The notes below the pieces were generated by a model. The model did not search any database. It was not told the origin of the DNA and worked only from the letters and a program-made list of their open reading frames with translations. This document shows positions 19,957 through 20,084 of a DNA stretch of 64,000 nt, piece by piece. The number at the start of each line of letters is the position of its first letter. Positions within the stretch are counted from its first letter, which is position 1. The position numbers were made by a program, and so were the translations under genes. The DNA lies in the IMG/VR virus record IMGVR_UViG_3300032053_000002, positions 62,001 through 126,000 of that record. One strand, given 5' to 3'.

Positions 19957-20084
19957 TTGGACAGGCAGGATTCGAACCCACACCCACCCGCTTATCATGC
20001 GATAACATTTTCTCTGGCGACCCGTTATCGGATAATTTTTGAAAAAACGTGTTTTAGGTGCTCTTCCAGTTGAGCTACTGTCCA
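19957..20084 (-). ncRNA. tRNA/Y-RNA chimera (tRNA body with an inserted closed Ro-type stem; possible GAT anticodon)
   Basis: TGGACAG/CTGTCCA-A, D-arm and T-arm intact; insert ACGTTTTTTC..TT-ATCCG ATAA CGGGT-C-G..GAGAAAATGT-TATC then CGC ATGATAA GCG. Confidence 0.7.

Follow-up and report, generated by a model that had tools for sequence, protein, structure and literature searches.

Genes and RNAs in the window

The window, by which we mean the whole 64,000-nucleotide stretch of DNA analyzed here, is part of IMGVR_UViG_3300032053_000002, a 292.7-kb phage contig, and carries its genes on the minus strand. Among these are 44 tRNA genes, none of which has the anticodon GAU, and a gene (rsr) for Ro60 (Table 1). 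The RNA with which this study is concerned, 128 nt long and referred to below as the candidate, is encoded within the main tRNA array, 5 nt after tRNA-Lys (20090-20162) and 7 nt before tRNA-Trp (which starts at 19949). Adjacency to rsr is a criterion that has been used to define bacterial Y RNAs (PMC4201824); the candidate lies about 17 kb from the rsr gene of the same phage and does not adjoin it.

Upstream of the window's rsr are two Y-like RNAs, copies B and C, in both of which GAUGGGU-C-G is paired to UU-AUCCGUC. A sub-threshold match to the manA RNA motif (4432-4769 (-); 34.3 bits, the threshold being 55.2; E 2.4e-6) falls between the Y-like RNAs of this region. In the window (3020-3035 (-)), as in the related phage L137 (9985-10005), the ribosome-binding region immediately preceding the start codon of Ro60 is overlapped by a Y-type motif, GGGUCGAAUC; Ro60 might control its own translation.

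The phage also encodes a tRNA repair and maturation set, consisting of an Rnl1-type ligase and an HD plus AAA_33 protein (34108-37193 (-)) together with a nucleotidyltransferase (11659-12381 (-)). The ligase-HD-kinase block is syntenic in L131 and L139-L142, and genes for Thg1 and RNase T occur in phage relatives, Thg1 in L135 and L137. Several of the tRNAs are unusual in their own right. One has the anticodon CUA (amber suppressor; 12629-12702 (-), labeled "Pyl" by ARAGORN), has a counterpart in the relative L135 (5834-5909), and hints at reassignment or readthrough of TAG. Another (19704-19779 (-); Rfam tRNA 44.7 bits) has an 8-nt anticodon loop, read by ARAGORN as "caga", and could be a four-base decoder or a frameshift suppressor. 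The 87-nt tRNA-Trp(CCA) (19863-19949 (-)) has a long extra arm between anticodon arm and T arm that is unusual for Trp and is kept in the relative L141 (16151-16237). Two PAS-domain proteins (6758-7936 (-) and 49493-50995 (-)), of which one is a hybrid histidine kinase that includes a receiver domain, are unusual phage cargo.

Table 1. Features of the window discussed in the text; position 1 of the candidate RNA is window position 20084
Feature	Window positions	Strand	Pairing or other evidence
Ro60 (Rsr) gene, presumed protein partner	1331-3019	minus	Pfam TROVE E 4e-36, Ro60 vWA E 4e-59
Weak YrlA-like element, permuted order (T arm, closed stem, D arm)	4005-4125	minus	Rfam YrlA 22.3 bits, E 0.2, gathering score 69
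Y-like RNA copy C, open stem GAUGGGU/AUCCGUC, bulged C, without tRNA domain	4305-4367	minus	Just upstream of tRNA-Met
Y-like RNA copy B, open stem like copy C	4868-4975	minus	Orthologs upstream of rsr in L135 and L137
Whole candidate, 128 nt, tRNA-shaped Y RNA with closed Y arm and open acceptor stem	19957-20084	minus
Acceptor 3' strand CUGUCCA plus discriminator A; no encoded CCA	19957-19964	minus
Variable loop UGGGU (5 nt) plus T arm GUGGG-UUCGAAU-CCUGC	19965-19986	minus
Mini anticodon-like hairpin CGC-AUGAUAA-GCG, triplet GAU, loop U at 2, A at 6	19989-20001	minus
5'-type strand of Y helix 2 (GAGAAAAUGU) into conserved UUAUC	20001-20014	minus
CGGGU, bulged C, G: 5'-type strand of Ro-type helix	20018-20024	minus
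AUAA tetraloop closing the Y stem, at the place of the YrlA 5' and 3' ends	20025-20028	minus
U plus AUCCG, 3'-type strand of Ro-type terminal helix	20029-20034	minus	U pairs with post-bulge G
A-rich linker UAAAAC, then 3'-type strand of Y helix 2 (ACGUUUUUUC)	20041-20056	minus	Pairs with 20005-20014
CC (27-28), top of anticodon stem	20057-20058	minus	Pairs with GG (97-98) at 19987-19988
D arm GCUC-AACUGGAA-GAGC	20060-20075	minus	Sequence; D stem also in RNAalifold consensus
Acceptor stem 5' strand UGGACAG	20078-20084	minus	Pairs with 19958-19964
HD plus AAA_33 kinase-like protein	34108-35115	minus
Rnl1-type RNA ligase	36018-37193	minus

Anatomy and detection of the candidate RNA

Read on the minus strand from 20084 to 19957, the candidate is, as a first-pass annotation of this DNA had described it, an intact tRNA acceptor, D arm and T arm with an insert of about 55 nt. 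The acceptor stem, UGGACAG/CUGUCCA, has 7 bp and is followed by the discriminator A, and the D and T arms carry the conserved tRNA loop sequences. The insert (positions 29-83, 55 nt) forms a hairpin of about 50 nt made up of the 10-bp helix ACGUUUUUUC/GAGAAAAUGU, an internal loop, a U.G pair, a bulged C and the 5-bp helix AUCCG/CGGGU. It splits the anticodon stem between positions 28 and 29, and a continuous 5-bp anticodon stem is absent; CC/GG or CG/CG stands at the same place as the candidate's outer pairs in L251, L252, L206b and the cyanobacterial subgroup.

The terminal part of the arm resembles the Ro60-binding helix of Y RNAs and YrlA in that a bulged C (C66) is followed by a G.U pair (U51.G67). 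Its 5'-strand motif, GUCGCCAG, departs from the published GNCGAAN0-1G (PMC4201824), so that the second pair after the bulge is a U/C mismatch; an A pairing with U after the bulge is present in 21 of 33 relatives.

The first-pass annotation had also likened the insert to copy C with the two strands exchanged. Two composite patterns, one per strand of the stem, GGGTCG..GAGAAA and TTTTCA..ATTATCCG, with chance expectations of 0.06 and 0.02, were found only in copy C and the candidate, and their strand order is swapped between the two. When the halves of the insert were each aligned locally with the window, however, copy C did not rise above background; it is the order of motifs and the structure, and not identity overall, that carry the likeness.

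Standard tools did not recover the gene as such. ARAGORN called a tRNA here solely when introns were allowed, and its parse (Tyr-ata) was poorer, the Rfam tRNA model RF00005 gave no match over the candidate even at E up to 10, and the Rfam YrlA model RF02553 gave partial overlapping hits of 17.5-19 bits, below its gathering score of 69.

A family of closed-arm, tRNA-shaped RNAs

Relatives were gathered by sequence patterns. The first, a conserved 5' strand (GGGTCG, 9-11 nt, RTTAYC) joined to a T loop, matched 78 IMG/VR stretches in which 5' strand, hairpin and T arm are like those of the candidate. Most have the parts in the order of YrlA, that is, 5' strand, short hairpin, T arm, closed acceptor-like stem, D arm and 3' strand, often in tandem; some have the order of the candidate instead. 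A second pattern, describing the closed hairpin, recovered more RNAs of the candidate's order in IMG/VR and in bacterial genomes. From 11 such closed-arm RNAs, the candidate excluded, we built a covariance model (R1), which placed the candidate first in the window (73.0 bits, E 1.4e-18, full length over model positions 1-128) and gave ordinary tRNAs of the window at most 37.6 bits. Over 25 sources R1 found 39 full-length members, spread across large phage contigs, cyanobacteria and one Chloroflexia genome; since collection was through sequence patterns, these counts and this distribution are lower bounds and biased. The candidate's nearest relative is a cyanobacterial member, at 66.7% identity.

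The alignment of the 39 members supports the proposed structure. Paired cells made up 97.1%, as against 72% in shuffles and at most 55.5% with slid partners, with pair counts somewhat inflated in alignment A4, which was fitted to the model. Changes on both sides were seen in 19 of 21 pairs. The acceptor stem was 99.3% paired with covariation in all 7 of its pairs, the T stem was 99.5% paired with compensatory changes, helix 2 covaried at 89% paired, and the Ro-type terminal helix was paired in every one of the 39 sequences. The same helices came from an independent analysis of 12 sequences with MAFFT and RNAalifold.

In the terminal part of the Y arm GGGUCG is invariant, as is UUAYCC in alignment A2; the AYCC/GGGU helix, the bulged C and the U.G pair are nearly so, the U.G lying beside the bulge in 32 of 33 sequences. 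In all the Y-like RNAs examined, closed or open, the 5' strand runs on into RUUAYC. One member (L206:1923-2049) has the vertebrate-type GGUCCGA/UUGACC at the position of the Ro helix. The loop that closes the Y arm measures 3-7 nt in 33 relatives, and the candidate shares their combination of open acceptor and closed arm. The first-pass annotation had made its proposal depend on homologs keeping the bulged-C stem, and they do, together with the AYCC/GGGU helix and the U.G pair.

These results bear on the reading of the locus as a dead, functionless tRNA gene that a stray Y-like repeat copy of the phage has interrupted. In favor of this reading, standard tRNA finders miss the gene, its motif (GUCGCCAG) is slightly degenerate, and the RNA was not found in the stretches examined of close phage relatives. 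Against this, all stems are intact, the 128 nt carry 0 substitutions across three contigs that differ by about 2% nearby, the RNA matches over its full length a model from unrelated genomes, and the architecture recurs in 39 genes with compensatory changes. We regard a dead gene as very improbable; the candidate is neither a one-off nor a broken gene.

Phage relatives and further copies

The phages L131, L135, L137 and L141 are syntenic with the window. The Ro60 proteins of L131, L135 and L137 are 56-67% identical to that of the window, and the Y-like RNAs upstream of rsr are conserved in L135 and L137. No closed-arm RNA was found in the stretches examined of L131, L135, L137 and L141, and L132 ends before the site; contigs with homologs of a 72-aa protein had no tRNAs. 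A 178-nt tRNA-like stretch in L141 (16488-16665) that has a 7-bp acceptor pairing and a T arm, and that ARAGORN reads as "tRNA-Pro with an 81-nt intron", was considered as a closed-arm RNA and rejected, as it has no Y motif and a long unexplained interior.

L131 carries other RNAs of interest. Between its tRNA genes at 13222-14560 are six complete small Y hairpins (AUGGGU-C-G, a 10-bp stem, UUAUC, AUCCAU) with compensatory changes between copies; several start directly after a tRNA 3' end, and a spacer of 17 nt separates copies 5 and 6, which form a tandem. At about 17521-17823, just upstream of tRNA-Met and rsr, are tmRNA-like ends (5' GGGGACG..GGAUUCGAC, 3' T arm plus acceptor) that ARAGORN does not call.

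Exact look-up of a 46-aa protein encoded in the array led to 5 further metagenome contigs 98-100% identical to the window. The 128 nt of the candidate are unchanged in all of them, with surrounding divergence of 0-2% (about 2% in three); the RNA being identical throughout, these contigs contribute no covariation. Searching IMG/VR for exact motifs from the candidate's hairpin gave chance matches only, and a scan with the 23-nt T arm plus acceptor matched only the source contig itself. BLAST of the candidate and of L253a against GenBank phages returned nothing past T-arm matches, and no closed-type RNA was found near the Ro60 gene of Sinorhizobium phage Phosso.

Association with Ro60 genes

Most closed-arm relatives directly adjoin rsr. 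The distance is 43-400 nt in L190, L252, L253, L305, L311, L323, L324 and L371; the RNA lies upstream of rsr by 43 nt in L190, about 300 nt in L252 and about 150 nt in L253, and just downstream of rsr in L206. In Pseudanabaena, Synechococcus, Pleurocapsa and other cyanobacterial genomes, and also in a Chloroflexia genome, clusters of 1-6 closed-arm RNAs stand directly upstream of rsr. Other genes of this type belong to tRNA islands of jumbo phages. Counting pattern-1 stretches together with the closed-arm pattern loci (L153-L257), a Ro60 gene was present within the examined piece of 50 loci.

The claim of the first-pass annotation that carries most weight here, that the RNA has the topology of an unpermuted YrlA with a free acceptor end and a closed Ro-type stem, was thus supported: 39 RNAs have a like layout, the 7 acceptor pairs covary, a model built without the candidate recognizes it, and relatives adjoin rsr. 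Docking of the candidate's own arm on Ro60 we infer from these motifs and associations.

The anticodon-like hairpin and the position of the arm

The small GAU hairpin picked out in the first-pass annotation proved to be a feature of the family. Whichever topology the RNA has, the hairpin preceding the T arm usually resembles an anticodon loop in having 7 loop nucleotides, with U at 2 and a purine at 6. The stem of the candidate's mini-hairpin recurs with other triplets in L339, L311, L315, L333 and L206:1923-2049. More generally, the triplet varies between copies (GAU, GUU, UCC, ACC, GUC, UAU) on a constant scaffold such as UCGC-loop-GCGG, a pattern that may reflect selection on the triplet itself.

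The insert was said to lie in the anticodon arm, and this holds in so far as the Y arm branches from the 5' strand of the anticodon stem, but it does so without taking the place of the anticodon arm. Six closed members have a perfect, covarying 5-bp anticodon stem around the Y arm plus 5-8 nt, and in the candidate's subgroup two outer pairs and a 3-bp inner stem enclose it. In two cyanobacterial members, L323 4035-4163 (-) and L324 2614-2740 (+), the Y arm is instead inserted into the D loop, with AGUU on one side and GGUAA on the other, and leaves a complete CAU anticodon arm. Since the anticodon stem encloses the arm or the arm lies in the D loop, we consider the Y arm an addition to the tRNA body. 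The insertion site thus varies (28/29, 31/32, or the D loop), and in L253:4541-4638 the anticodon hairpin is absent altogether.

This anatomy also allows the candidate to be read as an interrupted tRNA-Ile(GAU) gene, from whose transcript the 55-nt hairpin would be cut out and the halves joined, for instance by the phage's Rnl1-type ligase and kinase, supplying the Ile tRNA that the phage lacks. Exact removal of the 55 nt gives a perfect 5-bp anticodon stem and the 7-nt loop AUGAUAA, GAU is absent from the anticodons of the window's 44 tRNAs, and an ordinary tRNA-Ile(GAU) is present in the relative L131. Nearby genes encode an RNA ligase (36018-37193) and an HD plus AAA_33 protein (34108-35115), and the Rfam tRNA model parses L158, L190 and L206a as tRNAs with an insert. 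The candidate's A73, A37, A38 and C-G pair 29-41 also fit the known recognition rules of IleRS.

Several observations weigh against splicing. The insert contains invariant Ro-type motifs, its relatives adjoin rsr, and its position varies. In most members the triplet is unfit for the discriminator or for the short variable loop by the identity rules of the matching synthetase, as with Cys-like members that have A73 or C73 and Ser-, Leu- and Tyr-like members without a long variable arm. This misfit, with the member that has no anticodon hairpin (L253:4541-4638), argues against the family being spliced decoding tRNAs. The candidate's body is closest to the cyanobacterial family member, and the tRNA-Ile(GAU) of L131 scores no better than unrelated tRNAs. 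We know of no splicing endonuclease for such inserts in phages. Archaeal BHB, algal permuted and cyanobacterial group I tRNA genes do share with the candidate an interruption in or near the anticodon arm; however, at 55 nt the insert is far too small for a group I intron, the splicing endonuclease of archaeal and eukaryotic-type intron-containing tRNAs has not been reported in bacteria (bioRxiv 10.1101/312249), and the insert is a conserved module of putative protein-binding type at a variable position. An interrupted tRNA-Ile gene, possible for the candidate taken alone, is in our judgment unlikely.

Competing folds

Folded alone, the 55-nt insert adopts the described hairpin as its minimum free energy (MFE) structure (-11.6 kcal/mol, z -2.2). 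For the whole candidate, by contrast, ViennaRNA prefers another structure at -37.4 kcal/mol over the family fold at -29.3 kcal/mol, and the Y helix has a probability of about 0.19. The competing structure pairs CGAUAACG with UGUUAUCG and AUUAU with AUGAU; its closing loop is bound up with the conserved GUUAUC, and the anticodon loop is sequestered. It is chosen both by MFE and when folding is constrained to the tRNA framework, with a predicted advantage in stability of about 8 kcal/mol over the family fold. On this ground the RNA could be a two-state element, or have no link to Ro60, with the Y-like hairpin as a minor conformer. The competing helix, however, depends on the loop GAUAAC of this copy, and as relatives have other loops (UCC, GCAA, UUA, CAAU and others) the competing fold is specific to the candidate and not conserved. 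Nearest-neighbor energies, moreover, omit tRNA tertiary contacts and protein binding. That the competing fold dominates is, we believe, rather improbable.

Discussion

The observations are probably best explained, in our estimation, by a Y RNA in tRNA topology, in which a full tRNA body carries a closed arm of Ro60-binding type. The body comprises an acceptor stem that is open and 7 bp long, D and T arms, a variable loop and a short anticodon-like hairpin; from the 5' strand of its anticodon stem branches an arm of about 50 nt bearing the putative Ro60-binding helix (4-5 bp, bulged C, U.G pair, tetraloop). The RNA would be transcribed together with the tRNA array. With only 5 and 7 nt between the RNA and its tRNA neighbors, excision by RNase P and the 3' tRNA-processing enzymes is a natural expectation, and CCA would then probably be added. 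The arm would dock on the phage Ro60, leaving the tRNA-like body as the effector module. That body might bring Ro60 to a tRNA-binding partner, or it might serve as bait, by presenting an Ile-type anticodon loop, in the tRNA maintenance and repair set of the phage (44 tRNAs, Rnl1-type ligase, HD plus kinase protein).

Among known RNAs the closest is YrlA (RF02553), the tRNA-like Y RNA of bacteria and actinophages. YrlA and the candidate have in common D and T arms, an acceptor-type stem of 7 bp and a Ro-type helix in which a C is bulged and one strand carries a G-N-C-G motif, and both occur in genomes that encode Ro60. The candidate's short hairpin before the T arm corresponds to the region that the published model of YrlA treats as a "V" arm (PMC4201824). 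In its published description YrlA has neither a free CCA end nor an anticodon loop, resembles a circularly permuted tRNA, and possibly derives from dimeric tRNA transcripts (bioRxiv 10.1101/312249). The difference lies in the ends: YrlA ends in the Ro stem and has a closed acceptor stem, whereas in the candidate the Ro stem is closed by a 4-nt loop, the acceptor is open with its strands at the gene ends, abutting the neighboring tRNAs, and the arms follow in tRNA order.

The Rsr-bound YrlA of Mycobacterium smegmatis is cleaved in vivo by RNase P and has CCA added (PMC4201824). The cleaved molecule is likewise a Ro60-bound tRNA mimic ending in a free, CCA-bearing acceptor (PMC4201824), but it consists of two pieces held together by an open Ro stem and the tRNA fold, whereas in the candidate one unbroken chain would have tRNA ends at the outset. 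Yrn1 of Deinococcus radiodurans has D-like and T-like arms in tRNA order around an anticodon-like arm (PMC4201824); there, however, the Ro-binding stem replaces the acceptor and holds the ends, while the candidate has a free acceptor and carries its Ro-type stem as an additional, closed arm. tmRNA and viral tRNA-like structures also combine a tRNA mimic and free acceptor end with an added functional domain, but the candidate has neither an mRNA-like reading frame nor a pseudoknotted 3' UTR context, and its added domain is a helix of Ro60 type. A closed Ro-type arm on an open tRNA body was not found described in our literature search, with earlier mention possible in reviews or in supplements from 2014. 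Within that literature, the layout appears to be new for a known RNA family, and its function can be suggested from structure and genomic setting.

The unpermuted form bears on the effector of YrlA and on its origin. As to origin, it offers a concrete intermediate between tRNA and Y RNA. Closed-arm copies stand in tandem in L206 and L324, and the stretch from one Y arm to the next has the parts in the order of YrlA, which fits the published model of an origin from dimeric tRNAs. More speculatively, Ro60 tethered to a tRNA complete in other respects may be a widespread and overlooked strategy, specific to the anticodon and serving as a decoy or sensor for anticodon nucleases or as a codon-specific probe, and the closed-arm form may be the ancestor of permuted YrlA by tandem duplication; taken together, we hold these propositions only tentatively and think them less likely to be true than false.

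Genes of this kind are probably annotated as pseudo-tRNAs or intron-containing tRNAs and would be missed. A 2014 search recovered few YrlA RNAs from cyanobacteria and counted dimeric tRNAs among its potential false positives (PMC4201824); the closed-arm form may explain the small number. It also allows testing whether an RNA bound to Ro60 can be charged or can meet anticodon-specific enzymes.
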